Positions 32,799 through 56,937 are shown, counted from the first letter of the stretch. The stretch: DNA of 64,000 nucleotides from Rebecca billardiae RCC1528 (GCA_965240325.2 OZ251237.1:496001-560000), one strand, 5' to 3'. Numbers and translations are program-made. Notes: generated by a model from the sequence alone, not told the origin.

Positions 32799-34277
32799 AT
32801 GGAGGCGATGCATCGATGGTGGCTCCCCGTCGTCATCATCTCCGCAGCCGTCCACGCGGCCACCGACGACAGCCTGCGCGCGGGGAACCAGCTGTATGCC
32901 GACGGCGACCTCGAAGGCGCACGTCGCGCGTACGAGGAGTGCCTGCGCCTCGCACCCGGCGAGGCGATGTGCGCGACCAACCTCGCCTCAGTGCTCGTCG
33001 ATCTCAACCCCACCGCACACGGCGAGCGCGCGGAGGCGCTGTATCGCGAGGTGGCGGGAGGCAGCGGCGCAGCGGCGCTTGACGCGTCGTTCAACCTCGG
33101 CCTGCTGCTCCAAGACCGCCGCACGCAGGACGCGACGCGCGAGGCGTGCAGCCTATACCGCCGCGTGCTGCTCGGGGACCGGAGCCGGTGGGACGCGTGG
33201 TGCAACTACGCGGCGTGCCTCTTCGACCTGGGCGTGGTCGTGCCTGCGTTCACGGCGCACGCCAAGGCCATCGTGATGGGCGAGGGGAGCACCTCTGCCG
33301 AGGACGAGGCCGCGATCGCGCAGCCCCTCGCCTCGCTCTACCTCGGCCTGGGCCAGCTCCTGGCTGGCGCGGACGGCGACACGTGCTCTGCGCTGCGCGA
33401 GGCAGAGGGCAGCGAGGTGCTGATGGTGGACGAGGCCGACTCGGCCGTGGACGTGTGCCGCACGAACGCGCGGAATGCGCTCCTGCGCTCGCTCGAGCTG
33501 ATGCCCTCAGAGCGCGCGGAGCACGCGCTCGCCTCGCTCGACGCGGCGACGGGCGCGAGCGGGGCCGCCGCGGGCGGCCGCGATGCGCCAAAGCGCGCCA
33601 GCCCCGCTTTTGTCGAGGCGCTCTTCGACGACTTCGCGCCGAGCTTCGACGACAAGCTGAGCGAGCTGGAGTACCGCGTGCCCGAGATCATCGGCGCCGA
33701 GGCGGAGCGCCTCGTCGCGCGGCGTGGCCGCGCGCTCGGCAGCGCGCTCGACGCGGGCTGCGGCACTGGCCTCCTTGGCCCGCGGATTCGGTCGATCGTC
33801 GAGGGCGCGCTTGTCGGCGCGGACATCAGCCGCAAGATGACCGAGCGCGCGGCGCAGCTCGGCGTGTACGACAGGCTCGTTGTGGGGGACCTGCTCGACC
33901 TGGGCCGGCACGAGCGCCGGCCGTTCGAGCTGATCGCCGCCGCCGACGTGCTCGTCTACTTTGGCGACATCGGCGCGTTGCTGCAAGTCTTTGCGTCGCT
34001 GTTGGCCGCGGGCGGGCGCATCGTCTTCAGCTGCGAGGCGCTCGAGCAGGCGGGCTCGGCCGAGGCGGCGGGCGGCTGGCGGATGACCGCCTCGGGGAGG
34101 TACGCGCACAGCATGCGCTACGTGACCGAGGCCGCGCACGCCGCCGGCTTGAGCGTCGAGTCTCACCGGCGCATCGTGCCGCGGATGGAGAAGGGGCAGG
34201 CGGTCGCCGGCCACCTCTTCGTCCTCGCGCGGGCAGGCGACGCCCAGCCCTTGCAGATGCAACGCGACGAGCTGTAG
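32799..34277 (+). CDS. TPR-repeat SAM-dependent methyltransferase (COG4976-like) with signal peptide and C-terminal RDEL
   Basis: TPR-like helices; ALFDDFAPSFD..L..LEYRVP, LDAGCGTGL, AADVLVYFGD, SGRYAHS. Confidence 0.85.
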   Translation: MEAMHRWWLPVVIISAAVHAATDDSLRAGNQLYADGDLEGARRAYEECLRLAPGEAMCATNLASVLVDLNPTAHGERAEALYREVAGGSGAAALDASFNLGLLLQDRRTQDATREACSLYRRVLLGDRSRWDAWCNYAACLFDLGVVVPAFTAHAKAIVMGEGSTSAEDEAAIAQPLASLYLGLGQLLAGADGDTCSALREAEGSEVLMVDEADSAVDVCRTNARNALLRSLELMPSERAEHALASLDAATGASGAAAGGRDAPKRASPAFVEALFDDFAPSFDDKLSELEYRVPEIIGAEAERLVARRGRALGSALDAGCGTGLLGPRIRSIVEGALVGADISRKMTERAAQLGVYDRLVVGDLLDLGRHERRPFELIAAADVLVYFGDIGALLQVFASLLAAGGRIVFSCEALEQAGSAEAAGGWRMTASGRYAHSMRYVTEAAHAAGLSVESHRRIVPRMEKGQAVAGHLFVLARAGDAQPLQMQRDEL

Positions 34278-37949: not shown

Positions 37950-40900
37950 ATGAGGCGCTACGTCGCCGTGTTCGTGATGTCGCTGGCGTTCGCCGCGGCG
38001 GCGGCGTCGCCGCCGCGGGGCTCGGGGCTCCGGCTGCGCGGTGGCGCCTCGAGGCGCGTCACGCACCCCGAGCTCGACTCGCGCCTGCTCCGCCGGCTCA
38101 CGTTTGGCTGGCTCAACCCGCTGATCGATGCGGGCGCCGAGCGCAGCCAGCTCACCGACGACGACCTGATCGAGCTGCGCGAGGTGGACCGCTCCGAGCA
38201 CGTGCACGAGCTCTTTGACCGCGCCTACGTCGAGACCTCCGGCCCGTCCGACGCCGAGCGCCCCGCGCTGCACATCTTCCGCACGCTCGCGCGCGCGTTT
38301 GGCCGCCCGTTTGCTCTGACCGGCGTGCTCAAGCTCGTGAACGACTGCCTGCAGTTCGCGGGCCCGCAGCTGCTGCGCATGACGGTGAAGCTCGTGCAGT
38401 CGCCCGAGCGCAACGTCTTCGCGGGCGGCCGGCTCGTCCTCCTCCTCTTCCTCTCCTCCGCCATGCAGGCCATCCTGCTGCGCCACTACTTCTTCCAAAA
38501 CTTTCGCACCGGCATGCGGATCAACTCCGCGATCATGGCGGCGGTGTACGCCAAGACGCTGCGGCTGTCGTCGGGGTACCTGTCGAACGCGTCGACGGGC
38601 CAGCTGGCCAACCTGCTCACCTCCGACGCGCAGCGCATCTCCGACCTGCTCGGGTGCGCGCGCCGGCGCGCGTCCTCGATGCGCGCCGCGCCGCGCGCGC
38701 GCTCAAGCGCTCGCGCGACGCCCGTCTGAGCGGAGTGCGCACCGCGCCCCATCGGCGTGCAGGTACCTGCACGCGCTCTGGTTCGCGCCGTTCCAGATCC
38801 TCGTCGCGCTCGCCTTCCTCTGGCGCGAGATCGGCATCTCCACCCTCGCCGGCCTCGTGACGATCGTGCTGTGCCTCGCTGGCAACTCCGCCATCGCTCG
38901 GGTCACGTATGCCCTCAACAAGAAGCTGGTCGAGACGGCGGACGAGCGGCTGCGGCTGACGGCGGAGGTGTTCGGCAACATGAAGCTGGTCAAGATGAAC
39001 GTGTGGGAGGAGCCGTTCGCCGCGCGGCTCCGCGCCGTGCGCGCGCGCGAGGTCGCGCAGATGCGCACGCTCGCCGCGCTGCGCGCGCTGCTCAACACGC
39101 TGTTCACCGCGACACCGACGCTCGTCGCCGCGGCGATGCTCACGTGCCACTGCGCGCTGGGCTTCCGGCTGGACGTGCCCGCGGCGCTGACGGTGCTCGC
39201 GCTGGTGAACATGCTGCGCACGCCGATGCTCTTCCTGCCCATCGTCTCGAACAATGTGATCGAGGCCTCCTTTGCCGCGCGCCGGATCGCGCGCCACCTG
39301 CGCGCGCCCGAGCACGCGCCGCTCGGCGCGGGCGAGCTCACGGCGCCTGGCGTCCGGCTGCGCGGCGCGCACTTCCAGTGGCCGGAGGCGGAGGAGGAGC
39401 CGGCGGCGGGCGGCAAGACGGGCGCGTCGCCCACGGCCGCCGCCGCCGACGCCGCCGCCGACGCGCCCGGCGGCCGCGAGACGTTCGCGCTGCGCGCACT
39501 CGACCTCGAGCTCGGCTCGAAGCAATTTGCCGCCGTCGTCGGCGCTGTCGGCGCGGGCAAGTCGGCGCTGCTCGCGGCGCTGCTCGGCGAGCTGACGCTC
39601 ACGCGCGGCGTGGCGGCGCTGCGCGGGCGCATCGCTATCTGCCCGCAGCAGCCCTTCATCGCGCGCGGCACCGTGCGCGACAACATCGTCTTCGGCGCGC
39701 CCTTTGACCGCGCGCGCTTCGACGCTGTGATGGCCGCGTGCGCGCTCGACGTGGACGCGCGGTCGTGGCCCGACGGCGCGGAGACGGAGATCGGCGACCG
39801 CGGCGCGACGCTCTCGGGCGGGCAGCGCGCGCGGATCGCGCTCGCGCGCGCCGTGTACGCCGACGCCGACGTCTACCTCCTCGACGACCCGCTCTCCGCC
39901 GTCGACTCGACGGTCGCGCGCCACCTGACGACACACGTGCTCGGTCCAACCGGCATGCTGAAGGGCAAGCTGCGTATTGTCGCGACCAACGAGCTGGGCG
40001 CGGTGGGCAAGGCGGACGTGGTCTTCGGGATGGACGACGGGCGGATCGTGCAGCGCGGCACGCCGCTCGAGCTCGCCGCCGCGCACGGCGGCGTGTACGC
40101 GAGGCTGCTCGCCGCCGCCGAGCGCTCGCGCCCCGTGGCCGCCGGCGCAGCGGCGCCGGGCGACGCGCCCGCCGGCGGGGCGGCCGCGGGCGCTGCCGCC
40201 GCTGCACCGCCGGCGGCGGCGACGAGCCTGCGCGAGGCGATCGCGGCCGGCGCGGGCATGGACGACGACGACGACGACGACGACGACGAGCCCGACCAGC
40301 AGCCCGACCGCTCGGCCGAGCCGCGCCGCGCCGACGCCGTGCAGAGCGCGCGCACCGAATCGGACCGGCTGGCCGAGCAGCATCGGCGCGTGCCGGAGGA
40401 CCTGGCGCACGAAGTGACGGCGTCGCTCGAGGCCTCGGACTCGGGCTCGGCGGAGGAGGAGGAGGCGGGGCAGCCGGCGCGCGGTGGCGGCGCGCCGCGC
40501 TCGGGCGCGCAGCCGGTCGCCTCCGGGCTCACCATGCCCGAGGAGTCCGGCGTCGGCCGCGTCTCGCGCCGCCTCTACTCAGTCCTGCTGCGGGCGGCGG
40601 GCGGGCGCCGAATGCTGTCGCTGGTCTCGCTCGCCTTCTTCGCGGCGGAGGCGGCGTCTGTGGCGACGAACTGGCGGCTGACGCACATGTCGCGCGCGCG
40701 CACGCCGCTCGGCGGGCTCCGCGCGTACTGCCTGCTCGGCGCGCTCTCGGCGCTCGCCGTCTTCTTCCGCCAGCTGCTCGCGCTCGGCGCGGGCCTGCGC
40801 GCCGGCACGGTGCTGCACGAACAGCTGATCCGACGGCTGCTGCGCGCGCCCGTCGCCTTCTTCGACGCGACGCCGCTCGGCCGGCTGGTGAACAGGCTGT

Positions 40901-42321
40901 CCAAGGACCAGCGCACGCTCGACCTGCAGCTGCCCTCCACCATCTCGCAGTACGCGCAGACCATCCTCGTGTGCGCGAGCACGTGCGCGCTCATCTGCGC
41001 GACCGCGCCCGCCGCTTTGCTCGCGCTCGCGCTCGCGGCAATCGCCTACTCGTCGCTGCAGGGCCGGTACGTGAAGACGTCGACCGGGCTGCGCCGGCTC
41101 GAGTCGGCGGCGCGCTCGCCCGTGCTCTCGTCCGTGCTCGAGGGCGTCGAGGGCGCCCCCTCGATCCGCGCCTTCGGCGCGACCGCCTCGAGCACGGCCG
41201 CGCAGCGCGCGATGCTCGACCGGCTCTCGCGCGCCGTCTACGCTCTGATCGGGACCAACTCTTGGCTCGGGCTCAGGCTCGAGATCGTGGGCTCGGGCGT
41301 GGTGGCGGCGGCGGCGGTGGCGGCGACGCTGCTGCCCAACGTGCTCGGCGCGGACGCGGGCACCGCCGGCCTCGCCCTCGCCTCCTCGCTGCAGCTCACG
41401 CAGGTGCTCAACTGGAATGTCCGGACGGCCTGCGAGCTCGAGACGCAGATGATTTCGGTCGAGCGCGTGCACGACTTGGCGGTGGGCGCCGTCGAGGCGC
41501 CGTCCTTCCTCGCGGCGCCGCCGGCCGAGGCGGGCGGCGCGAGCCGCGGCGCGGGGGCCGACGCGGCGTGGCCCACCGCCGGCGCGCTCACCGTCTCCAA
41601 CCTCACCGCGCACTACCACTCCGCCGCCGAGCCCGTGCTCCGCCGCGTGAGCTTCTCGGTCGCGCCGGGGCAGCGGCTGGCGGTCGTCGGTCGGACCGGC
41701 TCGGGCAAGTCGACGCTGCTGCTCTGCCTGCTGCGGCTCGTCGAGCCGAGCGGCGGGCGGATCGCGATCGACGGCGTGGACACGTCGTCCCTCGGGCTCA
41801 CGCGGCTGCGCGCCGCGCTCGGCGTCGTGCCGCAGGAGCACACCACCTTCTCCGGCACGCTTCGCGACAATCTCGACCCGAGCGGCGCGCGCTCCGATGC
41901 GGAGCTGCGCAGCGCGCTCGCGGCGGTGCGGCTTGGCCACCTCGCGAGCTCGCTGGACGAGCCGCTCGGTGCGGGGCCGGGCGCGCCGGTGAAGCTCTCG
42001 GCGGGGCAGCGCTCGCTGCTCGCCATCGCGCGCGCGCTGCTGCCCCCGCGCCGCGCCGTCGTGCTCATGGACGAGCCCACCGCCTCAGTCGACGCCGAGA
42101 CGGATGCGCTCGTGCAGCAGCTCTTCGCGACCCACTTTGCAAACAAGACGACGATCACGGTCACGCACCGGCTGCGCACGATCGAGCAGGCGGACCGCGT
42201 GCTCGTGCTCGACCATGGCGCCGTCGTGGAGGAGGGCAGCCCGAGCGAGCTGCTCGCCTCGCCGGACTCCGCGCTTGCAGGCCTGCTGCGCTCGGGCACC
42301 ATCGAGCGCGAGCGCGTGTAG
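37950..42321 (+). CDS. ABCC/MRP-family ABC transporter (TMD-NBD-TMD-NBD) with signal peptide
   Basis: TFGWLNPLI, Walker A GAVGAGKS and GRTGSGKS, signatures LSGGQ and LSAGQ, LLDDPLSAVD, FFDATPLGRLVNR; intron 38654-38762. Confidence 0.93.
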
Positions 42322-44040
42322 CGCGTGTAGCGACTGAAGTGGCATCGGTGTCTCTCTATATAGCACCTGATGATGCGCATCATCAGTCGCGGCAGCCGCA
42401 GACATATCTGCTGACGACTGCATTGCCACGGCGCAGACTTATACTACTACTGCTGTATGCTGTAGTATTACAGTCCGGGCTGGTCGTCCCACTGAGTCCG
42501 AGTGAGTATGCGCCGGCGTCTGCCAGCTCACGAGCTGACGAGCGCGACTTCATCAAGTTCAGCAAAGGCCATCAAAGCTAGCGCGCGGACGAAAATCAGC
42601 TCGCCGAGAGGGCCCCGGCCCCGGGCCTGTGCGGGGTCGCGGTCGCGGCGCCGGGCGCGGGGATGCTGTCAGCTTCCGAGCCCGTACAGCTCGTCGCGCG
42701 CGCTCGGGGCGGTGCGCGAGGCGAAGCGGTACGACGGTGGCGTCGCCGAAGCAGCACCGCAGCAGCCACCGCTCGATGATGTGCGCGGCGTGAAGTGCAT
42801 GCGCACCGAACGTCTCCTCGTCGCGACATGCGCACCGCCTGCCGCAGCGCCCGCCGCTGCCAAGCCCGCCGCCGCTGCGCCATCAGCCGGCCCGGTGCTG
42901 CCGCACTCCCCGGGCGACCACTCGAAGATGCGCGCAGCGTGACGTGCGCGCCGAGTAACTCCTCGTAGCGAGATGCGCTCCGCCGGCGGCCGCCGCGCCG
43001 GTCGCCGCAGGGTCCACCGCCGCTGCGTCTGCCACCCCGCCGCCCGCCACAGTGCCGCGCCAGCGCAGGCGCAGCACCCGACCGCTGCGGCGCCCGCCCG
43101 GCTGTCACGCCCGCCGTCAGCAGGCCCGATGCTGCCACGCACGCCGCAGCGGTCGGGGCGTTTGATGCCGTCGCAGACGACGTGCGAAGCGCGGCGTCAG
43201 TACGCGGAGTCGGTCGCCGTGCGCACGCGGTCGACGCGCAGGGGCGCCGCAGCAGATGTCAGGTATGGTGACTGCGCTTCCGGCGGGCGTTTTGAAGCGG
43301 AATTTCTGGAACGCGTTGCTCACTGAAACTCGTGAGGAACCACCGTGCCCGATTTTGCACCCCGCGGACGCACGGTCGGCGCGCCGCGCGAGCCCGCACC
43401 GGGCGCAGAATGGGCGGGCCCTCTCCAGTCGTGGTGCCAGTTGCCACGATTCGGCGGCGTCTTGAGCTTGCGCGCGTCCGCAATCGCCCAGGTTCGCCTC
43501 ACAACTCGTGGTGCTCACTTCCCCGCCGGCTCACGCGGCGGACTCGCACTCGCCTCGCGCCCCAGCCTCACAGTTCGCGCGCAACCGCCGAACCTTCGCC
43601 GCCGAACCTTCGCATACTAGCTCCGTCTGTGCGTCTCCTATTCTCATCAGTAAACCAATCGCCCTTATTGAGTAAACTGTATAGACAGTACCCCCATATC
43701 GTCGCGTTTGCCGTAGGACTGTATCATACAGTTTGGACAAGGGCTCCAGGAACGGATCGTCGTAAAGTAGTAGAAAAAGTAGCGTCAACATTATGAACAA
43801 CATGGGAATAATCGCAACGACATGCGCTACCGGCGACCCCGAAGCCTCCAGCCCCTTGCGGTTATTAACTAAGACACTGTAAACTGTTAGCGTAGTGTAC
43901 CCATTCTACTTTAATGAGAATCGGTCGAGCGAGCCTTTATTGACGAACGAATTGCTGACTACACGCGCTTTAATTATACATATCCCCATCGCCGCATCTC
44001 ACCGCCTCATCCAATCCGCCGACGAGGCGCGCGCACCATC

Positions 44041-47000
44041 ATGCTCACCATGCTCACCAGCACCCCGCCGCCGACCCGCCGGCGGCATGCCAGTGTCGTC
44101 GCGCTCGTGATGCTTCTGTTGGTGTCGGGCGCTGCTGGCATCGCTTTCGAAAGCAGCACCGAGTACACGGACTGCATCGCCGACCCGGCGGCGTGCACCA
44201 GCCTGGATGTGCGTGTCGCGGCGCGAGGCCCCGCGCCCATCGGGCCATCCATCGCGACGGCGAGGCCAAACCTTGGCTCATGGCGCGCTCCGGCGAGCGG
44301 CCATGTAGCACAGGCGTGCGACGACGGTCGCCACGCGCTGCTGCGAGGAGCGATACCGCGCTCGCACGGTCGCCCTGACCTGCAGCAGTGGTCGCCTCCT
44401 GTCGCACGCAGCCTGTTGCCGTCGCTCTCTGTCTGACGTGCACCTCGCGCCGCGCGGCCACGCGGCGCGCGTGCCGTGTGCGCAGGTGGGTTCTGCTGGC
44501 TTCTCGGGCACCATTCCAACCGCCGTCGGTACGCTCTTCGCCCTCACTTTGCTGTACGCGCATGGCGCAGCGCGTGTGCCTACGAGCGCGGGCAGCGCGC
44601 GCAGTCGTGTGCTCGCCGGACGCCAGGCAGGCAGCCGAGAGGAACGTCAGAGGCATGCGCTCACGCGGCTCGCTCGTTCTCGCCTGGGGCTGCCTGCGCA
44701 CTGCACTCGAACGCCACTCGCTGCGCAGGCACCTCGATGCCAACTCCTTCTCGGGCAGCCTTCCGACGGAGATCGGCCTCATGACGGCCCTGACCGACAT
44801 GTATGCGCGGCCAGGACCACGGGCGGTGGCGCGACATGCTCGCCAGCCACGCGGGCGCACAGCGCGGCGCACGTCCTGCCGAGTCTGACCGCCCGCTCGC
44901 GTCGGCAATGCGCTCGAACGCCACTCGCTGCGCAGGCGGGTGCATGCCAACTCCTTCTCGGGCACGCTGCCGACGGAGATCGGCCTCATGACGGCCCTGA
45001 CCGATATGTATGCGCGGCAGGGACCACTGGCGGTGGCGCGACATGCTCGCCAGCCACGCGGGCGCACAGCGCGGCGCACGCCCTGCCACGCCTGACCGCC
45101 CGGTGGCATGCGATGCGCTCGCTGCGCAGGCTGGCGCAAGCCAACTCCTTCGCGGGCTCCCTGCCGACGGAGATCGGCCTCGTGACGGCTTTGACCCGAA
45201 TGTACGCGCGGCTGGGGCCAGGGGCGGTGGCATGCCAATCTCGCCAGCCACGCGGGTGCACAGGCGTGCGCATACAGCGCTGCTGATGCGCACGCTCTGC
45301 CTAGTCTGACCGCCCGCTCGCGCCGGCAATGCGCTCGAACGCCATTCGCTGCGCAGCTCAGTGACCACCAACTCCTTCTCGGGCACCCTTCCGACGGAGA
45401 TCGGCAACATGACGGCTTTGACCGCAATGTACGCGCGGCCGGGGCCAGGGGCGGTGGCGCGCCATTCTCGCCAGCCACGCGGGCGCACAGCGCGGCGCAC
45501 GCCCCGTCCAGCCTGAGCGCCCGCTCGCGTGCGACCCGCTCGAACGCCACTCGCTGCGCAGCAACATGAACGACAACTCCTTCTCGGGCAGCCTGCCGAC
45601 GGAGATGGCCCTCTTGCCGGCCCTGGACTGGATGTATGCGCGGCCGGGGCCAGGAGTGATGGCGCGACATGCTCGCCAGCCATGCGGGCGCACAGCGCGG
45701 CGCACGTCCTGCCGAGTCTGACCGCCCGCTCGCGTGCGACCCGCTCGAACGCCACTCGCTGCGCAGTTGGGCGCATGACAACTCCTTCTCGGGCAGCCTT
45801 CCGACGGAGATCGGCCTCATGACGGCCATATGTACGCACGGCCGGGGCCAGGGGCGATGGCGCGACATTCTCGCCAGCCACGCTGGCGCACAGCGCGGCG
45901 CGCATCCTGCCGAGTCTGACCGCCCGCTCGCGTCGGCAATGCGCTCGAACGCCATGCGCTGCGCAGGCACTTGTACAGCAACTCCTTTGCGGGCTCCCTG
46001 CCAACGCAGATTGGCCTCATGACAACCCTGACCCGGATGTATGCGCGATCAAGGCCAGGGGTGGTGACACGCCATTCTGACCCGCCACGCGGGCGCACCG
46101 CGCGGCGCACGCCCTGCCGAGTCTGACCGCCTGCTTGCGTGGGCAATGCGCTCGAACGCCATTCGCTGCGCAGGTACGTGAATTATAACTCCTTCTCCGG
46201 CACCCTTCCGACTGAGCTCGGCCTCATGACGGCCATGATCTATATGTACGCGCGGCCGGGGCCAGGAGCGATGGCGCGACATTCTCGCTATAGACACGCG
46301 GCCGCACAGCGCGGCGCACGCCCTGCCGAGCCTGACCGCCTGCTCGCGTCGGCAATGCGCTCGCACGCCACTCGCTGCGCAGGCGGGTGTTTACCAACTC
46401 CTTCAATGGCACCCTTCCCACGGAGATCGGCCAGGTGACGGCCCTGGCTATGGGGTACGCGCTGCCGGGACCACGGGCGGTGGCGCGACTTGCTCGCCAG
46501 CCACGCGGGCGCACAGCGCTGCGCACGCCCTGCCGAGCCTGACTGCCAGCTCGCGCCGGCAATGCGAGTGAACGCCCCTCGCTGCGCAGAATGGTGAACA
46601 TCAACTCCTTCTCGGGCTCCCTGCCGACGGAGATCGGCCTCGTGACGGCTTTGACGGCAATGTGCGCGCGGCAGGGGCCAGGGGCGGCGGCATACCAATC
46701 TCGCCAGCCACGCTGGTGCACAGCGCTGCTGATGCGCACGCTTTGCCGAGTCTGACTGCCCGCTCGCGCCGGCAATGCGCTCGAACGCCATTCGCTGCGC
46801 AGCACAATGAACACCAACTCCTTCTCGGGCACCCTTCCCACGGAGATCGGCAACATGGGGGCTGTGACCGATGGGTACGCGCTGCCGGGGCCAGGGGCGG
46901 TGGCGCGACATGCTTGCCAGCCACGCGGGCGCACAGCGCGGCGCACGCCCTGCCGAGTGTGACCGCCCGGTGGCATGCGATGCGCTCGAACGCCACTCGC

Positions 47001-50000
47001 TGCGCAGCACGCTGAACGGCAACTCCTTCTCGGGCAGCCTGCCGACGGAGATCGGCCTCTTGCAGGCTTTGACCCGGATGTACGCGCGGCCGGAGCCAGG
47101 AGCGATGGCGCGACATGCTCGCCAGCCATGCGGTCGCACAGCGCGCTGCACGCCCTGCCGAGCCTGACCGCCCGGTGGCATGCGATGCGCTCGAACGCCA
47201 CTCGCTGCGCAGGTGGGCGTATGACAACTCCTTCTCGGGCAGCCTGCCGACGGAGATCGGCCTCATGACGGCCGTGAAATTTATGTACGCGCGGCAGGGG
47301 CCAGGGGCGGTGGCGCGGCATTCTCGCCAGCCACGCTGGCGCACAGCGCGGCGCACACCCTGCCGAGCCTGACCTCCCGCTCGCGTCGTCAACGCGCTCG
47401 CACGCCACTCGCTGCGCAGGTACGCGTATGACAACACGTTTTCAGGCACCCTTCCAACGCAGATTGGCCTGATGACAGCCCTGATCCACATGTATGCGCG
47501 ATCAAGGCCAGGGGTGGTGACACGCCATTCTGACCCGCCACGCGGGCGCACAGCACGGCGCCGCTGCGCACGCCCTGCCGAGTCTGACCGCCCGCTCGCG
47601 TCGGCAATGCGCTCGAACGCCGTTCGCTGCGCAGGTACGTGCAGGACAACTCCTTCTCGGGCACCCTTCCCACGGAGATCGGCAACATGACGGCCCTGAA
47701 CGATATGTGCGCGCGGCCAGGGCCACGGGCGGCGGCGCTCGCGCGACGGGCGGGTCCCCGCGTGCCCCGGGTGATCCCACGCTGCGCCGCGCGTGCTGCT
47801 CCTGCCGCTGACGCCGACGCGTGCACGGCCGTGCCCCCGCCCCGTCGCCGCGGATTGGTACCATCGATACTTGCAGGAGGGTCCAGAACACGCAGCTGTG
47901 GCAGCCCGGCGGCACGCACGTGTACCCTGCCGTGACGCCGTCGACACTCCCAGACGCACCACCGCCCGCCCCGCCCTCGCCACCCGCGGCCCCGCCCTCG
48001 CCACCCTCGCCACCGCCCTCTCCGCCGCCGCCGGACTCGCCGCCCAGCCCGCCACCGAGCCCGCCGCCGCCGCCGAGCCCACCACCGTCGCCGCCGCCGA
48101 GCCCGCCGCCGAGCCCGCCGCCCAACCCGCCACCGTCATCCCCGCCGAGCCCGCCACCGTCGCCGCCTCCGCCACCGAGCCCGCCGCCGAGCCCGCCGCC
48201 GAGCCCGCCGCCCAGCCCGCCGCCATCACCACCGCCGAGCCCACCACCGTCGCCGCCTCCGCCACCGTCACCACTGCCGAGCCCACCGCCGAGCCCGCCG
48301 CCGAGCCCGCCACCGCCGCCGAGCCCACCACCGTCGCCACCACCGAGCCCGCCGCCGCGCCCACCGCCCAGCCCGCCGCCGTCACCACCGCCGAGCCCAC
48401 CACCGCCGCCAAGCTCACCACCGTCGCCACCACCGAGCCCGCCACCCAGCCCGCCGCCCAGCCCGCCGCCGTCACCCCCGCCGAGGACACCACCGCCGCC
48501 AAGCCCACCACCGTCGCCACCACCGAGCCCGCCGCCGTCACCGCCGCCCAGCCCGCCGCCGTCACCGCCGCCGAGCCCGCCACCGTCGCCGCCTCCGCCA
48601 CCGTCGCCACCGCCGAGCCCACCGCCGAGCCCGCCGCCGAGCCCGCCACCGCCGCCAAGCCCACCACCGTCGCCACCACCGAGCCCGCCGCCGTCACCGC
48701 CGCCCAGCCCGCCGCCGTCACCGCCGCCGAGCCCGCCACCGTCGCCGCCTCCGCCACCGTCGCCACCGCCGAGCCCACCGCCGAGCCCGCCGCCGAGCCC
48801 GCCACCGCCGCCGAGCCCACCGCCGTCGCCACCACCGAGCCCGCCGCCGAGCCCGCCGCCCAGTCCGCCGCCGTCGCCACCGCCGAGTCCACCACCGCAG
48901 CCAAGCCCACCACCGTCACCACCACCGAGCCCGCCGCCGAGCCCACCGCCTTCATCCCCGCCGAGCCCGCCACCGTCGCCGCCTCCGCCACCGTCACCAC
49001 CACCGAGCCCACCGCCGAGCCCGCCGCCGAGCCCGCCACCGTCGCCACCGCCGAGCCCGCCGCCGCGCCCGCCGCCCAGCCCGCCGCCGTCACCACCGCC
49101 GAGCCCACCACCATCGCCGCCTCCACCACCGTCACCACCACCGAGCCCACCGCCGAGCCCGCCGCCGAGCCCGCCACCGCCGCCGAGCCCACCACCGTCG
49201 CCACCACCGAGCCCGCCGCCGAGCCCGCCGCCCAGCCCGCCGCCATCACCACCGCCGAGCCCGCCACCGTCGCCACCTCCGCCACCGTCACCACCGCCGA
49301 GCCCACCGCCGACTCCGCCGCCGAGCCCGCCACCGCCGCCAAGCCCACCACCGTCGCCACCACCGAGCCCGCCGCCGCGCCCGCCGCCCAGCCCGCCGCC
49401 GCCACCGCCGCCGAGCCCACCACCGTCACCACCACCGAGCCCGCCGCCGAGCCCGCCTCCGAGCCCGCCACCACCGCCGAGCCTGCCGCCGTCACCACCG
49501 CCGAGCCCGCCGCCCAGCCCGCCGCCCAGCCCGCCGCCGCCACCACCGCCGAGCCCGCCACCGTCGCCACCTCCGCCACCGTCACCACCGCCGAGCCCAC
49601 CGCCGAGCCCGCCGCCGAGCCCGCCACCGCCGCCAAGCCCACCACCGTCGCCACCACCGAGCCCGCCGCCGCGCCCGCCGCCCAGCCCGCCGCCGCCACC
49701 GCCGCCGAGCCTACCACCGTCACCACCACCGAGCCCGTCACCGAGCCCGCCTCCGAGCCCGCCACCACCGCCGAGCCTGCCGCCGTCACCACCGCCGAGC
49801 CTGCCGCCCAGCCCGCCGCCCAGCCCGCCGCCGCCACCACCGCCGAGCCCGCCACCGTCGCCGAGCCCACCACCGTCGCCACCACCGAGCCCGCCGCCGA
49901 GCCCGCCGCCGTCACCACCACCCAGTCCACCACCACCGCCGCCGAGCCCGCCGCAGAACCCGCCCCCCAGCCCACCATCGCAGCCGCCGCCGTCGTCGCC

Positions 50001-53000
50001 GCCTGCCTCTGCGCCCTCCGCCCCACAGCCACCGCCGCCGCCGCCGCCCTCGCCACGAGCGATGGGCCGCGCGTACGACGGCTACCTTGCGGACTGTATC
50101 GTCTTCGTCGACCTCGACGCCGACCTTCGACTCGACGCGGACGAGCCGTTCGCCGCCACCGACGCGAGCGGCGGCTTCCCGCTGCTCAACGCGGACGGGC
50201 GGTACGGCGCCGCGCCGTACGTGCTGCTCGCCGAGGCGGGCGGCGCGTGCGTCGACTCCAACTCCGGGCTCGACGTGAGGATCCCGCTGATGGCGGGCGC
50301 GGGGCAGGCGGCCATCTCGTCGATGACAACGGTCGTACTACTCGCCGCGCGCGCGCTCGAGGCGCGCGGCGTGGGCGCGCCCGCGCTCGCCCTGCTCTCC
50401 TCCGGCGGCGGCGCGCCTAGCGAGGCGGCCGCGTCCGACCTCGAGCTCGCGACCGAGCTCGCGGTCGGCGGCTGCCTGCAGCTGGACATGGGGCCGGCCG
50501 GCGGGCTCGCCGACCCGTTCCCCGAGCTGTGGCTCGGTGGCGAGCAGGCCGCGCCCAAGGTGGAGCTTGTGCAGCACACGGCGGCGCTGCACGCCGTGAC
50601 GACGCTCGTTGCGGGCGCGCTCGCCGCGTACGACTCTGGCAACTCGACGCAGGCTGCGTCCGCGGAGGCGATGCGTCCGCACGCGGCGAGCGTGCAGCAG
50701 GCGATGGCCACGCTGATGGCGGACGCGCTCGAGGCCGGGCTGCGCGCTGCGGCGCTCAACCTGACCAGCGGTGCGCCTCTCGGTGGGGCCAGTACCGGCG
50801 CTGCGCTGCCCAACGTGTCGTGCGCGCTCGACCTCGGCTCGGAGGCGACGGTGGAGGCGGTCGTGTTGCGCGCGAGCGCGCAGCAGCTGGGCGCGAGCGT
50901 GCAGCCGCCGGCCGAGACGGTAGCGCCACTCTCGCGGCTGGTCTCCTCCACCGTGCGCGCGACGCGGTCGTTCCTGCAGCCCGCCGCCGCCGCGGTGCGA
51001 GCCTCGCCCAACGCCACGGCCAACGCCACCGCCGCCGCGTCGGCCTACGTGCAGCGCGTGAGCGCGGGCACTCGGCTCGTGCAGTCGACGCTGCTCACGA
51101 TGGTCGCGCCGCTGCTCGCGACGCTGGGGCGCGAGATGCGGGCGCCAAACGCGACGACGACGCCGCTCGCTGGCGCGAACGCAAGCAACGCAACGGCGCT
51201 CAACGCGACCGACGGCGAGCCTGCCGCCGGCGGCGGCGCGGGCTCGTCCGCGCTGCTCGCCTCGACGGTGGCCGCTCTGCAGGAGATCGCAATCTCGGTG
51301 GGCGTGGCCGACGGCACCCGCACGCCCGCCGCGGTCGAGAGCGAGTTGAGCAGCGTGGACCCGGCGGAATGCCCGCCGACGGCTTGGTGCGCATCGGCAG
51401 CCGCCCTCTTGCACCCGCCGCGGCTGCTGCGGGCGCGCTTCAACGGCCAGGCGACGGCGCTGCGCCTCGAGTTTGACGCGCAGCCGACCAACCGCGCGGG
51501 CATGGCGACGGGCGTGCAGCCGTGCAGCATTGTGCTCGACGATGCGACGCTCGCCCGCGTGCGCGGCGCGGCGGAGGCGGAGCCGGGCTGCTTCTGGGAG
51601 GACGATAGCACGCTTGTCGTGCATCTGGACAGCCGCACCGCTCTGCTCCCCGGCGATGCCGTGGGCATCCGCGCCGACGCGCTGCGGCCGCGCGACAGCG
51701 CGCAGCCGTGCCCGCACGAGCTGTGCGCGCCCGCGGCGCAGGTGACCATCCCGGCACAGCCCGCGGCGGCGTGCGTCGGCGGATGCCCGGTACCCGTGGC
51801 GGTGCTCGCAGGGCCGACGACGGTGTCGCCGTGCCCGTATCAGCCCATTCTGCTGCGCTCGACCGGCTCGTCCGCCGGCGGCGTCGCTGCGCCCGAGTAC
51901 TCCTGGTCCGTCAACGCGTCGGCAGCGGCAGCGCTCGCGCCCGCCGCCGCGGCCGCGCTCGTCTCTCGGGTGGCGGCGGCGCGGGGGGCGAGCCTGAGCG
52001 TAGAGCTGCCGCCGGGCGCCGAGTTTGTCTTCGAGCTCCGGCTCGTCTCGTTCCTCGGCTTCGCCTCCGCGCCCGCCGCCGCCACCGTTGCCCGCACCGC
52101 CTCGCTCTCGCCGACGGTCGCGCTGCTCGGCCCGGCGGTGCAGACGGTGGCGCGGCCGGGCGCAAAGCACGTGCTGCTCGTGCGCGCCGAGCCTGCGTTG
52201 TGCTGGCCGGCGGCGACGTCGCGTGGGATTCAGTTTCTGTGGGCGGTGCGCGCCGCGCAGCCCGCCGACGGCTCCGCCGGCCCTACGCCGCCGCCACCCT
52301 TCGACGCGGCGACGGCGGGCACGCGCGCGCAGCTCACGCTTGCGCCATACTCGCTTCGCGCTGGCTACCGGTATGAGCTCGAGCTCACGGCGACGATGGC
52401 GGCGGACGCGGCGGCGAGCGCGAGCGTGCGTGTGGAGCTGCTCGTGGGCACGGCGCCCGTACGCGCCGCCATCGCCTCGGGCGACCGCACCGCCTCGCTC
52501 GAGGCGGACGCCATCGTGTTCGACGGCTCGGCCTCTGCCGACGGCAACACGGGCGGCTCGGACGGCCTGGCTTTCGCGTGGACGGTGCTGAGCGCGGGCG
52601 GCGGCAGCGGCGGGCCGCCGCCGTCGCCGCTCGCATCGGTGTCCGGCACGGCTGCGAATGCGACGCACTTCTCGCTCGCGCCCGCTCAGCTCGGCCTCGC
52701 CGCGGGCGAGTACGACGTCCGCCTCGCCGTCTCGAGCGCGGACGGGCGCGCGGCCACGGCCAGCGTGCGGCTCACGCTCGTGCCGAGCGCTGTGCCGCAG
52801 CTGGCGCTGGCGCTCAGTGGGGCCGGGCGCGGGAAGTACAACGCGGCTTGGGACTCGCCCGGCGAGTCCATCTCGGTGCTCGTGACGCTAGATTTCGGCG
52901 TGTCCGCTGCCGAGACCGCTGACAAGCCCGCCCTCGCGTACCGCTGGAGCGTCGCCGAGATGGTCGATGGCGTGGCCGCGCCCGCGCGCCGCGTCGACGG

Positions 53001-56000
53001 CCGCCCGCTCGACCTCGCAGACGCGCGCACGACCACGACGACGGGCGACGCGAAGCGCTCTCTCGTCTTTCGTTCGGGGGTGCTCACGCCCGGCGCGACG
53101 TACGCGCTCACGCTCACGCTCGAGGTGTCTGGCGCCGCGCAGCCCGCCGTCTCCCGCCTCACCGTGGTGATGAACCGCCCTCCGTACGGCGGCAGCCTGC
53201 AGCTGTCGCCGGCCGAGGCGCGCGCGTTCGAGCCCGTCGCGCTGATCGCGGCCGGCTGGACGGACGACGAGGCTGAGGACCTGCCGCTGCGGTACGCGTT
53301 CGGGTACGTGCGCGCGGGCGCGGCGGCGGAGCAGCAACTCACTGCCGCGTCCTCGCTCGAGCCCTCCGCCTCCGCCGTGCTGCCCGAGGGCGAGCACAAC
53401 GCGACGCTCGCCGTGACCGACCAGTTTGGCGGCGTGGCGAGGGCGAGCGCGCTCGCGCGCGTGCTGCCGCTGCCACCGGCCAACGTCACCGCGGAGGCGG
53501 CGGCCGGGCAGGTGAGCGCGGCGCAGAGCGCGCTCGACGAGGGCGACGTCGACCTTGCGCTGCAGCTCGTGGTCGCCGTCGCAGATGCCCGCCGTCACCG
53601 AGGCCAACGCCACCGATGCGCGCGCCGTCACAGCCAGCCTGCTCTCGCAAACAGCCGCGCTCGCAGCCGCTGGCGTGTCTGAGCTCGACGGCGGGGCGGC
53701 GGCGTTGTCGAATGCGGTCGCATCAGCGCTTGCCGAGCCGCTCGCGCTCTCCGCCGACTCGCAGCTCCAAGGCCTTACGCAGCTCGCCGCCATCGTCGGG
53801 GACTCGCCGTCGGCAGACGGCATTGACGCCACGACCGCGGGCAACGTCGGCCGCGGCATCGACTCGGTCCTCGCCGCAGCCGCTCCCGGCGGCGGCGACG
53901 GCGGCACCTCGCCGAGCGCGGGGACGGAGCCGGCGATAGACGAGGCAGTGCGGAGCTCCGCACGCACGCGCTCCGACGGGCTGCTCCTCGGTGTGCTCCC
54001 GGGCGAGCGCGCGCGCGACTTCGTCGGCGAGCGGCTGAGCCTGAGCTCGGCGCGAGAGTTTGCCGCTCTGTCGATGTGGCCGGCGGGCGCGGCACGGTGG
54101 GCCTACCGGTGGGCGTGCTCGACGGCAGTTCGGTTACTGGCGACGCGGTGGATGTGCAGCTCGTGCTGCTCCAGCGCAACGTGCACGACGACCCGCGAGA
54201 CCGTCCAGGCGACCTCGCCACGGCGAGCTCGAGCGCGCTCGGCGGCGGCAGCGACACCGAGTATGCGCTCGGCGAGCAGCGCGCGCTGTTCGGCGTGACG
54301 CTCGCGGACGCGCGGTCGCGCGCGCCGTTGCAGATTCGCGAGCTGGCGACGTCGATCACCATCACCATCCCGCTGCTGGGCGTGGACGAGCTGCCGTCGC
54401 TCGGCGGCGAGCCGCGCGCCTCCGGCGTGTGCGCGGACGCGAGCGAGTGCGCGCCGCCTGGCGACGAGCCGCGCGGCAGCTGCATCGCGGCGCCGGCTGT
54501 CAACGCCTCCGCTGGCGACAGCGGAGGCGGCAGCGGCGGAGCATGCGTGTGCAACGCGGGCTTCGCGGGGGCGGCGTGTGACCAGCTGCAGACCTGCCAC
54601 TTCTGGAACGAGACGTCGCGTCGCTGGTCCTCCGAAGGCTGCCGCGCCGTCGCCGTGAGCGCGGGCGCGCTCGTGTGCGCGTGCGACCACCTCACCGACT
54701 TCGTCGCCCTCGGCGCCGCGATCGAGAGCGTCGCGGCGGGCGACGACTCCGGCGAGGTCGCGGTGAATCAAATCGAGACGGAGAAGCTCGAGGACAAGTC
54801 ACCGAGCGGCGTGGTCCAGGAGGTGGCCGGGCGCCTTGCGGCCAACTTTTGGGGCGTGGTCGTCGTGTGCGTCGTGCTCGGGCCGATGCTGCTGCTGCTC
54901 CTCGTCGCGCACCGCGTCGACCTGCAGATCGAGCGGCAGCCGTCGGTGCCGCAGTGGAAGCTGCGCGCGGCAAAGTCCATCTGGTGGCGCGCGGGGGCGC
55001 ACATGCTCACGCGCTCGACGCTCACCTCGTGGCTCACGCGGCTGCCGGGCGACCCGGTGAGCGCGAAGATGCGCGTGCTGCTGCTGATGAACGTGACGCT
55101 GGTCGAGCTCTTCGTGATGGCGCTCTTCATCGGCCAGGCGGAGGACATCTCCGCGACGCAGCTCATCGTGAGCGTGGCGGTGGGCATCGCGTCGGGCTAC
55201 CCGTACGAGGCCTTCTTCCTCGAGCGGCTGCTCGTGTGGAGCGTGCGCAGGCGCGGGCTGCTCGAGGAGCGGCCGGACGGCGTCGACCTGGCGGACGAGC
55301 AGGCGCGCCGCGCCGCGCTGCGCGTGGCGGCGGTGGTCCAGCCGACGACCGCAGCGACTAGTGCGGCCGCCGCGGCGAAGACGGCGCGGGGCGCGGCAAG
55401 GGCGGCGCACGACGCGGTGCAGGGCGCGGCCCACGCCGCAGCGCACGCCGCGCACCTCGACCGCCCCAACGCCCAGCAGCCCAAGGACAGCGAGTCGGAC
55501 GGAAGCGAGCCGGTCGCGCACAAGCTTCGGTACGCCCGGCCGGAGCTCGTCAAGCTGATCGAGGCCGACGCGGTCAGCGCGCTGGCGGCCAGCGAGGCGG
55601 CGGGCGAGGAGACCAGTGGCGCGCCCTCGCCCCCGCCCTCGCTGAGCGCGCAGTCCTCGCCCATGCATCGGTCGCAGTCGCCCGTCGCGCCGCACCGCGC
55701 GGCGGATTCAGGCGCGCATGACAGCGGCAGCAGGGTGGCGCCGCCGCGCGCGCTCGTGCGCCGCGCGAGCTCGGTCCGCTCGGTGGCCCAGCCCGGCTGG
55801 ATGCGGGCCAAGGCCGCCGGCCTGCCGCCGGGCACGATGACGGTGAGCATGCCCGACCAGGCGCTCATCTCCATCCCGACGGAGCATGGGCAGATCGTCG
55901 GCTTCTTCGTCGCGCGCACGTGGCAGGAGACCGTGATCAAGACGATCCCTCCGCCCAACAGGCGGTCCATCCTCTCCGAGATGGCGGGCGTGCAGCTGCA

Positions 56001-56937
56001 CTTTGACCGCGGGCAGGACGAGCTGCTGGCGGAGGCGCACCGCACGCTCGACTTCCTCCACGACGGCGTGCCTGACGTGCGCTTTGTGCAGGCCGAGCAC
56101 GTGTACCGCCGCGCCCCGATCCCCGCAGACGAGGCGAGGAGAACGTACGGCATGGTGAGCATGCGCATGCACACGCGGCGCGAGTTGACGGCCGGAGGCG
56201 CTGCCAAGAAGGCGCGGCGGAGCAGCCTGATGGCCGGCCGGGGGCGCGGAGACAAGGAGAGCGTGCCGATGGGCAAGATGGTGCAGGTCGTGCACCTCAC
56301 CAGCCCGTACGTCGACGGCCGCCAGATCCTGCCCACCGACGTGATCGCGCAGCCCAACGTGGCCACGCGCGCCGCCCTCGAGGCGTACGACCGGTTGCAA
56401 GGCCACGGCGACGGCCACCGCCAAGGGCACGCCGCGGCCGCCGAGCTCGGCGAGGCCGAGGCAGCGGCTGCGGAGTTGGGCGCGGCGGCCACAAGCGCGC
56501 ACGCCGAGCCGATGACACGCCATCGCGTGCACGAGCGCGTGCGCCTCACACGCTCCGAGCTGGAGCACGCGCAGTGGTGGTCGAACAAGCCGAAGACGTG
56601 GAAGCTGCGGACGGCGACCACGGTGAACGTGCTCCTCATCTGCGCCGTGGCGTGCATGGTGCTCGCCTTCTCCATCCTCGGCGGCGCGGGCGTGCGCGAC
56701 CCCGACATGTGGCGGCAGGAGATCCTCGTCGCGTGGCTCATCGAGACCGCGTTCAAGCTCGCGCTCATCGAGCCGGGCGTCGTGATCACGCAGCTGATCG
56801 TCGACCTCGTTGTGAAGACGTGCGTGCCCGAGTCGTACCGCGCATGGGCGATCGAGGTGTTCGTCGAGCCCCTCCTCCACCAGCTGCGCAGGCCGAAGAA
56901 GCTGTTCAAGGATGTCCTCGGCTTCGACGTGTGCTAG
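44041..56937 (+). CDS. giant LRR - Ser/Pro stalk - REJ-like - EGF - GPS - 5TM polycystin-1-like surface receptor (>=18 exons; contains frame disruptions)
   Basis: Signal peptide in exon 1 (44041-44208); LRR exon 44486-44553, then 15 cassette exons; large exon from 47877. GPS motif CHFWNETSRRWSSEGC...CACDHLTDF; EGF CVCNAGFAGAAC; five hydrophobic segments. Frame changes near 53585 and 54070. Confidence 0.8.
44554..47706 (+). repeat. tandem array of 15 intron + LRR-exon units (~195-230 bp period)
   Basis: Exons start at 44729, 44936, 45130, 45357, 45562, 45767, 45967, 46174, 46383, 46590, 46803, 47008, 47213, 47420, 47635. Each is 72 nt except 45767 (65 nt), preceded by CGCTGCGCAG and followed by GT. 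Confidence 0.95.
47957..50055 (+). repeat. extensin/pherophorin-like (SPPP)n coding repeat, ~700 aa
   Basis: Translation is almost entirely Ser-Pro3-5. Confidence 0.95.

Follow-up and report, generated by a model that had tools for sequence, protein, structure and literature searches.

The window analysed, 64,000 nt of Rebecca billardiae RCC1528, comes from a very GC-rich, alga-like eukaryote. It contains a tandem array of exons that each encode a single LRR, and this array is the head of a single large gene comprising a signal peptide, 16 LRRs, a stalk, a REJ domain, a GPS motif and membrane spans (Table 1).

Table 1. Features of the LRR–stalk–REJ gene, numbered from the first nucleotide of the window.
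Feature	Position	Strand	Evidence
Signal-peptide exon (exon 1) with the start codon, 56 aa, phase 0 at its end; donor GTGCGT at 44209	44041–44208	+	
Exon 2, first LRR, divergent and outside the repeat family; 68 nt, phase 0 to 2	44486–44553	+	
Tandem array, 14.7 copies of a 207-nt exon-plus-intron unit	44698–47738	+	Tandem Repeats Finder
Cassette c1, 72-nt phase 2-2 LRR exon	44729–44800	+	
Cassette c2	44936–45007	+	
Cassette c3, block partner c10 (introns 94% identical)	45130–45201	+	
Cassette c4, block partner c11	45357–45428	+	
Cassette c5, block partner c12	45562–45633	+	
Cassette c6, defective, 65 nt, 7-nt deletion near 3′ end; partner c13	45767–45831	+	
Cassette c7, block partner c14 (introns 96% identical)	45967–46038	+	
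Cassette c8	46174–46245	+	
Cassette c9	46383–46454	+	
Cassette c10	46590–46661	+	
Cassette c11	46803–46874	+	
Cassette c12	47008–47079	+	
Cassette c13	47213–47284	+	
Cassette c14	47420–47491	+	
Cassette c15, final LRR	47635–47706	+	
Last intron, 170 nt, phase 2; only first ~31 nt possibly homologous to the repeated intron	47707–47876	+	
Extensin-like stalk, 702 aa, 520 Pro and 154 Ser, mostly SPPP repeats	47953–50058	+	Translation; tandem repeats
REJ domain, in the frame of the stalk	52321–53577	+	Pfam PF02010, E=8.3e-32
First 1-nt frame change against homologue P0001, frame 3 to frame 1	53584–53599	+	tblastn
Second, compensating 1-nt frame change, frame 1 to frame 3	54065–54081	+	tblastn against P0001
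GPS (GPCR proteolysis site) motif	54592–54702	+	Pfam PF01825, E=3.7e-10
Membrane region, ORF end at 56937	54832–56820	+	Kyte-Doolittle scan, translation

Fifteen units, each about 207 nt long and made up of an exon and a homologous intron of 122–155 nt, follow one another in the array. The exon is 72 nt long in 14 of the 15 cassettes; in the cassette at 45767 a 7-nt deletion has reduced it to 65 nt. Exon length is otherwise constant across the array, whereas the introns carry six classes of indels. The exons are composed of 1 nt, 23 codons and 2 nt, so that every intron of the array is in phase 2. All array introns begin with GT, in the donor form GT[AG][CT]GC, and end with AG, and their mean pairwise identity is 85.7%. 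The same terminal 10-mer, CGCTGCGCAG, is present at all 15 acceptors, which account for 15 of its 16 matches in the window (3.3 expected by chance). The exon core pattern has 14 matches against 0.00 expected. From 44486 onwards the interval contains 16 LRR exons, 15 of which are members of the repeat family; exon 2 matches the nhmmer exon profile weakly (E=0.077). The breakpoints of the units fall within introns according to both Tandem Repeats Finder and nhmmer. With the nhmmer intron profile, a match covers the final 32 nt of the leader intron (44697–44728), while that to the initial 31 nt of the trailing intron (47708–47738) is at chance level (E 3.7); the end called by Tandem Repeats Finder is the firmer support for the array boundary at 47738. 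In run X1, a 183-nt contig is identical to 46586–46768, covering the c10 exon and its intron with zero differences, which confirms this part of the array at the DNA level. This run yielded only unspliced genomic pieces at the array, few and short, at about 2–5x coverage. These results agree with the earlier note, which had described 15 tandem single-LRR cassettes of 72 nt (one of 65 nt), and the phase-2 flanks, homologous introns and invariant intron 3′ end that it reported are confirmed.

The consensus of the cassette peptides is xxxxNSFSGSLPTEIGLMTALTx, with N5, F7, G9, L11, P12 and T13 invariant. If the junction codon (M or I) is placed at the fourth position, the consensus reads L-x-x-[MI]-x-[LVMA]-x-x-N-S-F-S-G-[ST]-L-P-T-E-I-G-x-[MLV]-x-A. 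Its period of 24 residues and its pattern fit the plant-specific LRR class, the reference consensus of which is LxxLxLxxNxLSGxIPxxLGxLxx. A single 23-aa cassette is too short for Pfam, and its best match there is LRR_1 with E=0.16. The spliced reading without the 65-nt cassette is a stop-free domain of 359 aa, which aligns with the contiguous LRR ORF of L006 (E=1e-58). The contiguous ORFs of L006 and L004 pass the Pfam models LRR_1, LRR_8 and LRR_14; the spliced domain is thus significantly similar to proteins recognized by curated LRR models. The core codons F7, L11 and P12 have undergone synonymous changes only.

The translation of exon 1 shows a basic n-region (RRR), the hydrophobic core VVALVMLLLVSGAAG and a short Cys-containing cap. 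At the other end of the array, four AG dinucleotides in 47876–47904 were checked as acceptors of the last intron, and only the first joins the frame of the downstream ORF. The phase-2 splice from c15 leads into the stalk/REJ frame, an ORF spanning 47821–53682. The GC content reaches 0.83 at the extensin-like stalk. The REJ domain shares 53% identity with P0001. Four hydrophobic windows exceed the cut-off of the Kyte-Doolittle scan in the membrane region (54832–54927, 55069–55143, 56605–56700 and 56758–56820). The order of REJ domain, GPS motif and membrane spans is that of the polycystin-1/sea-urchin REJ family, whose large ectodomain likewise ends in REJ and GPS before the membrane spans. Human polycystin-1 also begins with LRRs. 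The gene differs from this family in its 702-aa stalk and in the PLAT or PKD-channel domain: a Pfam search of 54076–56934 at E<=0.1 gave zero matches to a PLAT or polycystin channel-like domain. Relatives carry other heads on the same base, namely TIG repeats in P0001 and Ig-like repeats with a Pro/Thr stalk in P0002. The predicted signal peptide, the Pro/Ser stalk, the REJ domain, the GPS motif and the membrane spans support the earlier proposal of an extracellular receptor. We infer translation of the whole gene, extracellular display of its head and the class of its ligand.

The array has grown by duplication of single units and by duplication of a block of seven cassettes, and recombination has left mosaics in it. 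Intron identity is 0.906 at a lag of seven cassettes and about 0.85 at other lags (permutation p=0.0004). The cassettes c3–c7 and c10–c14 are reciprocal best partners, and the exons of c6 and c13 are 94% identical, with c13 intact. Contrary to the lag-7 homology, c2, c11 and c12 have a patch at the 3′ end of the intron in common. The PHI statistic also indicates mosaicism (0.395 against 0.467 ± 0.02 in permutations, p<0.0005), with the reservation that its input includes selected sites at the exon edges, where repeated changes can mimic recombination. Together with the 85.7% intron identity, these results point to recent duplication and recombination of exon–intron units. Unit duplication, block duplication and mosaics, together with the codon contrast described below, support germline exon duplication with diversifying selection.

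The differences between cassettes are concentrated in five codons. At the hypervariable codons 1, 3, 4, 22 and 23, which are the x positions of the LxxLxLxxN strand, 58.3% of the sites differ, against 18.6% in the rest of the exon and 14.3% in the introns. The same contrast is seen among the seven block-duplicate pairs (42.6% at the hypervariable codons against 9.3%; Fisher p=5e-16). For the cassette core, dN is 0.136 and dS is 0.273. The binding-face set is divided by an intron, with two codons in the 3′ part of one exon and three in the 5′ part of the following exon. With the introns as neutral yardstick, these codons have evolved at about six to seven times the intron rate, a ratio that homogenisation of the introns by conversion would inflate, although the diversity of the face would still need selection. 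The pattern supports the view that these five codons, predicted to be solvent-exposed, are under diversifying selection. The excess of change at concave-face residues (58% against 14%) and the dN/dS pattern of the core support diversification of the ligand face, in line with the diversifying recognition system postulated in the earlier note, and the note's suggestion that the homologous introns serve as recombination substrates holds for the germline.

On the basis of the anatomy, duplication history, rate contrast and domain context demonstrated above, we propose with a probability of roughly 0.7 that the array is the ligand-binding head of a receptor, built in the germline by unequal crossing-over and with its face codons diversified by selection. 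Amplification of the 207-nt unit (72-nt exon and about 135 nt of intron) would have come first, through repeated unequal crossing-over in the homologous introns, followed by duplication of some seven units together (about 1.45 kb); later conversion or recombination would have produced the mosaic patches. With 72-nt exons between phase-2 introns, the reading frame survives whenever a unit is gained or lost, and the LRR solenoid lengthens or shortens by exactly one turn. After duplication, introns and structural core codons would have drifted by about 10–16%, while the rate at the five face codons of the LxxLxLxxN strand would have been some six to seven times higher. Such a pattern of rates may be read as the signature of selection for new binding specificities, for the recognition of variable ligands such as pathogens, prey, or mates and self.

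It is possible, though in our view doubtful, that the array is only the fossil of such diversification in a once-functional LRR–stalk–REJ receptor. The assembled sequence does not allow translation through the whole gene. Inclusion of c6 shifts the frame and leads to a stop in c7, whereas skipping of c6 keeps the frame, and two 1-nt changes flank 53600–54064. Both changes are located between the REJ domain and the GPS motif, and the stalk/REJ frame as assembled terminates at 53682. The need to skip c6, together with the two downstream frame changes, suggests that this copy may be inactivated; judged from its sequence, it could belong to a birth-and-death family and have lost its function only recently. 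The 7-nt deletion in c6 and the 1-nt changes at ~53590 and ~54070 relative to P0001 are three independent disruptions. The neighbouring ABCC transporter is an uninterrupted ORF of 1154 codons, and the local assembly does not appear error-ridden. Furthermore, inactivated exons and pseudogenes are common in the analogous Ectocarpus families (PMC3341825). However, the two 1-nt changes cancel exactly, which is unexpected for random decay and possibly reflects consensus errors at 70–80% GC. There are zero in-frame stops in any cassette or in the 1935 codons of the stalk/REJ frame, each of the 15 cassettes retains intact splice sites, and a clean 359-aa LRR domain is restored without c6.

Combinatorial alternative splicing, in which cassettes would be skipped in many combinations to give a repertoire of LRR heads from one gene, is considered unlikely. 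The array recalls Dscam in its tandemly duplicated, frame-compatible exons of a surface recognition protein. In Dscam, docking/selector RNA pairing selects a single exon from each cluster. Such pairing is absent here, and a solenoid of LRRs is built from many repeats together, so that the resemblance is an analogy only. The search for docking and selector elements found only short, imperfect, GC-rich inverted matches, and no arm of the leader intron that pairs with each cassette intron. The 5′ end of each intron can pair with the 3′ end of each intron through an invariant 7-bp helix that could loop out exons, but covariation does not support this helix (covariation term +0.26). The identical splice signals and the 2-2 symmetry would keep the frame with any subset of cassettes, and a similar mechanism has been published for the 72-nt phase-2 LRR exons of Ectocarpus (PMC11378527). 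A productive mRNA needs c6 to be skipped, and at least one skipping event would occur if the gene is functional; the splice sites of c6 are, however, as good as those of the other cassettes, and inclusion followed by message decay is equally likely. Uniformly strong splice sites favour constitutive inclusion. Most simply, splicing of the array is constitutive, save for the required skip of c6.

Somatic assembly or exon shuffling within the lifetime of the organism, which would resemble adaptive immunity, is highly improbable. Like the lamprey and hagfish VLR, the array combines LRR cassettes with hypervariable concave-face residues, and homologous flanks and a mosaic history add to this general resemblance. 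The somatic assembly of VLR genes draws on flanking donor cassettes devoid of splice sites. Here, in contrast, all cassettes are spliceable exons of one gene, in a single orientation and with intact splice sites. No orphan, inverted, truncated or splice-site-less cassette was found outside the array by nhmmer exon and intron profiles on either strand of the 64 kb. Germline unequal crossing-over fully accounts for the mosaicism. Moreover, somatic recombination was not found even in the brown-algal LRR systems where it was first proposed (PMC11378527). The remaining reading, a non-coding minisatellite with an LRR-like translation by chance, could appeal to the 207-nt tandem repeat in a GC-rich genome rich in long spurious ORFs, but it is effectively refuted by exons fixed at 72 nt beside introns with indels, invariant core residues that change synonymously only, a GT..AG pair at each exon boundary, the match of the spliced product to genuine LRR domains (E=1e-58) and a splice out of the array that stays in frame with the REJ-domain ORF.

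The layout of the germline-built head proposed here is itself already known from brown algae and ciliates, and the analogy drawn in the earlier note to brown-algal ROCO and ciliate LRR genes is backed by published precedents: single-LRR exons, including their alternative splicing, in the former (Zambounis et al. 2012, PMC3341825; Teng et al. 2024, PMC11378527) and equal-length exons in Tetrahymena (PMC6564038). As in the ROCO and LRR-only 'type I' exons of Ectocarpus and Saccharina, a 24-residue LRR is encoded by one 72-nt exon of fixed length between introns of a single phase, phase 2. Further likenesses are the duplication and shuffling of exons, positive selection acting at residues of the concave face, the presence of inactivated exons and pseudogenes in the family and a proposed immune or recognition role, and alternative splicing has been proposed there as an added source of diversity. 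The brown-algal proteins, however, are cytosolic LRR-ROC-COR GTPases, whereas the LRRs here are predicted to be secreted, as a head joined by a Pro/Ser stalk to a base of REJ domain, GPS motif and membrane spans. The Ectocarpus exon (GxxPxxLxxxxxLxxLxLxxNxLx) keeps the beta-strand intact, while here the intron cuts it (LxxL|xLxxN); this difference in exon register is evidence that the layout arose independently. The inverted LRR remnants reported from Ectocarpus introns are absent from the 64 kb. With neither ROC-COR partners nor the same exon register at this locus, the array is the same kind of system as the brown-algal ROCO arrays but belongs to a different gene family.

The arrays of 90-bp LRR exons in Tetrahymena (Xiong et al. 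2019, PMC6564038) likewise consist of equal-length tandem exons with phase-2 introns, a junction codon shared by neighbouring exons and, in young arrays, homologous introns. Their growth is attributed to unequal crossing-over, and the number of cassettes varies between paralogues (PMC6564038). They differ from the present array in LRR class and domain partners, in exons of 90 nt without one-to-one mapping to the 24-residue repeat, and in their association with a LINE-like element; no such element was seen adjoining this array. In L008, a relative found in a marine metagenome, four single-LRR exons of 72 nt occur at the same intron position but with unrelated introns, which indicates that the design of one repeat per exon predates this young array.

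The eukaryotic genome bearing the interval 44486-47900 has a GC content of about 70%. In this interval, Tandem Repeats Finder detects 14.7 copies of a 207-nt unit (Table). Parsing of the units at their splice signals yields 15 cassettes, 14 of which have an exon of exactly 72 nt, while the exon of cassette 6 has 65 nt; the introns between the cassettes measure 122-155 nt. Since every cassette exon comprises 23 codons preceded by one base and followed by two, all cassette introns are in phase 2. The array of 15 phase-2 exons described in the earlier note, each carrying a single leucine-rich repeat (LRR), holds in all its particulars after this parsing. The same is true of its introns, which had been described as homologous with an invariant acceptor end: their mean pairwise identity in a unit-by-unit alignment is 85.7%, and an identical 10-mer forms the acceptor of 15/15 cassettes, with one further copy in the 64 kb (16 matches against 3.3 expected). 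The donor sites conform to GT[AG][CT]GC, and the exon-core pattern gives 14 matches against 0.00 expected. The 23 internal residues have the consensus xxxxNSFSGSLPTEIGLMTALTx, with N5, F7, G9, L11, P12 and T13 invariant, and the junction codon between cassettes always encodes Met or Ile. Repeat and junction codon together fit the plant-specific 24-residue LRR class, LxxLxLxxNxFSGxLPxEIGxLxx. A 16th LRR exon, 68 nt long, starts at position 44486 in phase 0 and ends in phase 2; its divergence excludes it from the repeat family.

The units of the array are most probably exons and not a satellite. The introns show six indel classes versus a constant exon length, the only exon indel being a deletion of 7 nt in cassette 6. 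At the codons for F7, L11 and P12, nucleotide changes are exclusively synonymous (pS 0.46-0.74, pN 0). A Pfam search with the individual 23-residue cassettes, which are too short for the models, gave no significant match. LRR identity was tested transitively instead, from the spliced read through contiguous metagenome ORFs to Pfam. Joining the exons without cassette 6 produces a read of 359 residues with zero stops. This read matches uninterrupted LRR domains on metagenome contigs over about 340 residues (E=1e-58 for contig L006), and these contiguous ORFs pass the Pfam models LRR_1, LRR_8 and LRR_14.

The array is predicted to be the distal LRR head of a large surface receptor with a rigid, glycoprotein-like stalk and a base of the polycystin-1/REJ type. 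This assignment is based on the signal-peptide exon upstream, the in-frame splice into the stalk ORF, the REJ domain, the GPS motif and the hydrophobic windows. The intron on the 3′ side of cassette 15 has 170 nt, is in phase 2 and ends at 47876, the first AG past a pyrimidine-rich stretch. Among the four AGs checked between 47876 and 47904, it is the only one that joins the frame of an ORF of 1935 codons. This ORF opens with the stalk, 702 extensin-like residues consisting mainly of SPPP repeats, of which 96% are Pro or Ser (74% Pro, 22% Ser). The stalk repeats show higher-order periods (90, 156 and 294 nt). Not only every forward frame but also one reverse frame is open across the stalk; its frame can therefore not be fixed by ORF length alone. 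The REJ domain lies further along the ORF (Pfam E=8.3e-32). A GPS motif follows it (E=3.7e-10), and beyond this motif the hydrophobicity exceeds the cut-off in four windows. A PLAT or channel domain was not detectable in this base. A search of 5.8 billion proteins with the REJ region returned only two relatives, neither of which contains LRRs. On the same REJ base, P0001 (contig L001) carries TIG/IPT repeats and P0002 carries Ig-like repeats with a Pro/Thr stalk. The differing heads of the two relatives suggest a modular receptor design of head, stalk and base. The best database relative of the ABCC transporter next to the receptor gene is only 53% identical.

Coordinates of the receptor gene parts and other ORFs in the window
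Feature	Position	Strand	Remark
Family-2 glycosyltransferase domain	4583-7927	+	ORF
PHD finger and HAT_KAT11 (p300/CBP-type histone acetyltransferase) domain	25151-30445	-	Long ORF
Class-I methyltransferase domain	32742-34274	+	ORF
ABCC/MRP-type ABC transporter	38857-42318	+	Uninterrupted 1154-codon ORF directly upstream of receptor gene
Upstream exon of receptor gene	44041-44208		Start codon and typical signal peptide
Tandem repeat array	44698-47738		207-nt unit
Cassette 6 exon	45767-45831		65 nt
Pro/Ser stalk	47953-50058		702 residues
Segment between REJ and GPS	53600-54064		Read in other frame than its flanks

In the unit-by-unit alignment, mean pairwise identity is 84.6% for the exon core and 51.2% for the 25 nt at the exon edges. 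Codon-level variation is limited to codons 1, 3, 4, 22 and 23, which are the five x positions of LxxLxLxxN when the junction codon is taken as the fourth position. In LRR structures, the x residues of this motif line the concave ligand-binding sheet. The same placement is given by Zambounis et al. 2012 (PMC3341825). At the five face codons 58.3% of sites differ versus 14.3% in the introns, a ratio of about 7 between the Jukes-Cantor-corrected rates. Intron identity rises to 0.906 at a lag of seven units versus about 0.85 at all other lags (permutation p=0.0004), and cassettes 3-7 are reciprocal best partners of cassettes 10-14. The periodicity and the reciprocal partners show that a block of about seven units was duplicated. 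Across seven independent block pairs, 42.6% of face-codon sites differ versus 9.3% in introns (Fisher p=5e-16). At the 5′ border, similarity to the repeated intron covers the final 32 nt of the leader intron (E=0.00036). At the 3′ border, the trailing intron resembles it over its first 31 nt at chance level only (E 3.7), and Tandem Repeats Finder puts the array end at 47738. The outer breakpoints of the repeat thus located inside introns are probably the footprint of unequal crossing-over. The PHI test (0.395 observed versus 0.467 +/- 0.02, p<0.0005) indicates a probable mosaic history of the array, and cassettes 2, 11 and 12 have a common patch at the 3′ side of the intron that contradicts the lag-7 homology. 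Recombination between homologous cassette introns, which the earlier note had put forward, is supported by the block duplication, the intron breakpoints and the PHI result.

Taken together, the rate contrast, the lag-7 block, the intron breakpoints and the mosaicism argue that exon-intron units were duplicated and recombined in the germline and that the binding face then came under strong diversifying selection. Unequal crossing-over would copy frame-neutral exon-intron units, and selection would then rewrite only the five ligand-facing codons of each repeat. The array would be a very clean natural example of the growth and diversification of an LRR binding domain, in which the sister introns serve as an internal neutral yardstick for measuring the effect of selection on the face codons.

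In metagenome contigs, the repeat type was detected at 11 loci by a profile search, and an exact-pattern search of metagenome contigs with the 36-nt exon core gave zero matches. At nine multi-repeat loci most of the repeats are contiguous in one frame with a spacing of 72 nt; L011 has a single motif. The overlapping contigs L007 and L008, from a marine eukaryote with a GC content of 64%, contain four single-LRR exons of 72 nt. These exons are cut in phase 2 at the same place of the strand as in the window array, and no two of their introns (142-173 nt) are related. Because of this shared cut with unrelated introns, the layout of one repeat per exon is likely to be an older gene-structure trait of the group and the window array a young expansion. 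The region 4330-7023 of L008 (overlapping L007) contains a signal-peptide exon, the four LRR exons and a Cys-rich duplicated module. The module has only a weak CUB-like Pfam match (E 0.0013, below the cut-off), and a C-type-lectin-like stretch was read by eye, with Pfam giving no match. The L008 product is a further LRR-headed surface protein, whose body differs.

Comparable arrangements have been described in two other lineages. According to Zambounis et al. 2012 (PMC3341825), the ROCO genes of Ectocarpus have a separate 72-nt exon for every LRR, undergo exon shuffling and show positive selection at the concave face. In four brown algae, Teng et al. 2024 (PMC11378527) found this 72-bp phase-2 exon structure confirmed, together with up to nine alternatively spliced LRR combinations per gene; the authors point out that somatic recombination has not been found. 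Tetrahymena has tens of thousands of LRR exons of exactly 90 bp in phase 2, which expanded via unequal crossing-over (Xiong et al. 2019, PMC6564038). The window array works like the brown-algal and Tetrahymena systems and is a member of neither family. Its partners are the stalk, REJ and GPS, whereas those of ROCO are ROC-COR, and the predicted window protein is secreted while ROCO is cytosolic. Furthermore, the beta-strand is interrupted by the intron in the window array (LxxL|xLxxN) but lies entirely within the exon in Ectocarpus. This difference in intron position suggests that the layout of the window array may have arisen independently of the brown-algal one. A design known from cytosolic brown-algal ROCO and ciliate LRR genes would now be found on a secreted head with an extensin-like stalk and a polycystin-type base in a GC-rich protist. 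The locus alone is one more example and offers no new principle. It is a real, well-defined and statistically clear case in which LRRs multiplied via exon duplication under diversifying selection, and the receptor scaffold that carries them is unusual.

This copy of the gene may not be intact. Inclusion of cassette 6, which lacks 7 nt, shifts the frame and leads to a stop in cassette 7, while skipping keeps the frame; its splice sites are equal in quality to those of its neighbours. Relative to the homologue P0001, there are 1-nt frame changes within 53584-53599 and 54065-54081. The two changes compensate each other and bracket a coding segment of 465 nt between the REJ domain and the GPS motif. 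As a consequence of the first change, the stalk/REJ frame, as assembled, ends at 53682. Tiny introns were rejected as the cause, the homologous segments being only 16-17 nt apart. Recent inactivation of the copy is one explanation; in the other, errors in the consensus of this very GC-rich DNA account for the indels, and cassette 6 is a pseudo-exon that is skipped. The adjacent ABCC ORF, uninterrupted over 1154 codons, gives no sign of an error-prone local assembly, and the analogous Ectocarpus families have many pseudogenes and "inactivated exons" (PMC3341825); both points speak for the first explanation.

It is unlikely, with a probability of roughly one in eight, that the array is a working splicing-based generator of diversity, in which a single gene would combine a polycystin-like signalling base with many different LRR heads as part of a family-wide recognition system. 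Productive messages would then have to skip exons, because cassette 6 breaks the frame. The uniform splice sites and the complementarity of the intron ends would permit many cassette combinations. As the intron cuts the binding strand, every new exon junction would create a new composite strand, with two face residues from one exon and three from the next. If true, this would give a recognition system to a lineage from which none has been known. The sequence shows no sign of a dedicated mechanism. A search for docking and selector sequences of the Dscam type revealed nothing convincing, and no part of the leader intron is able to pair with every cassette intron. The 64-kb window contains no cassettes that are orphaned, inverted or lacking splice sites. 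In every repeated intron the 5′ end GCGCGGC is complementary to the 3′ end GCTGCGC (e.g. 44805-44811 with 44927-44933), and RNAalifold on 14 introns returned an invariant end-to-end helix of 7 bp. A functional RNA structure is not claimed for this helix, since it shows zero covariation.

A search for RNA runs matching 44000-48000 gave zero results. The single sequencing run matched to the window, X1, contains 6% of the words of the REJ region. On 43900-47950 it gives six short pieces at very low depth. They carry intron sequence and are genomic, and the run was rejected as evidence of splicing. Record 6 of this run, a contig of 253 nt, matches cassette 13 (47229-47314) with 15 differences, and the five differences listed fall in or beside the hypervariable 3′ codons. 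This record probably represents a variant cassette of a different array, allele or strain.
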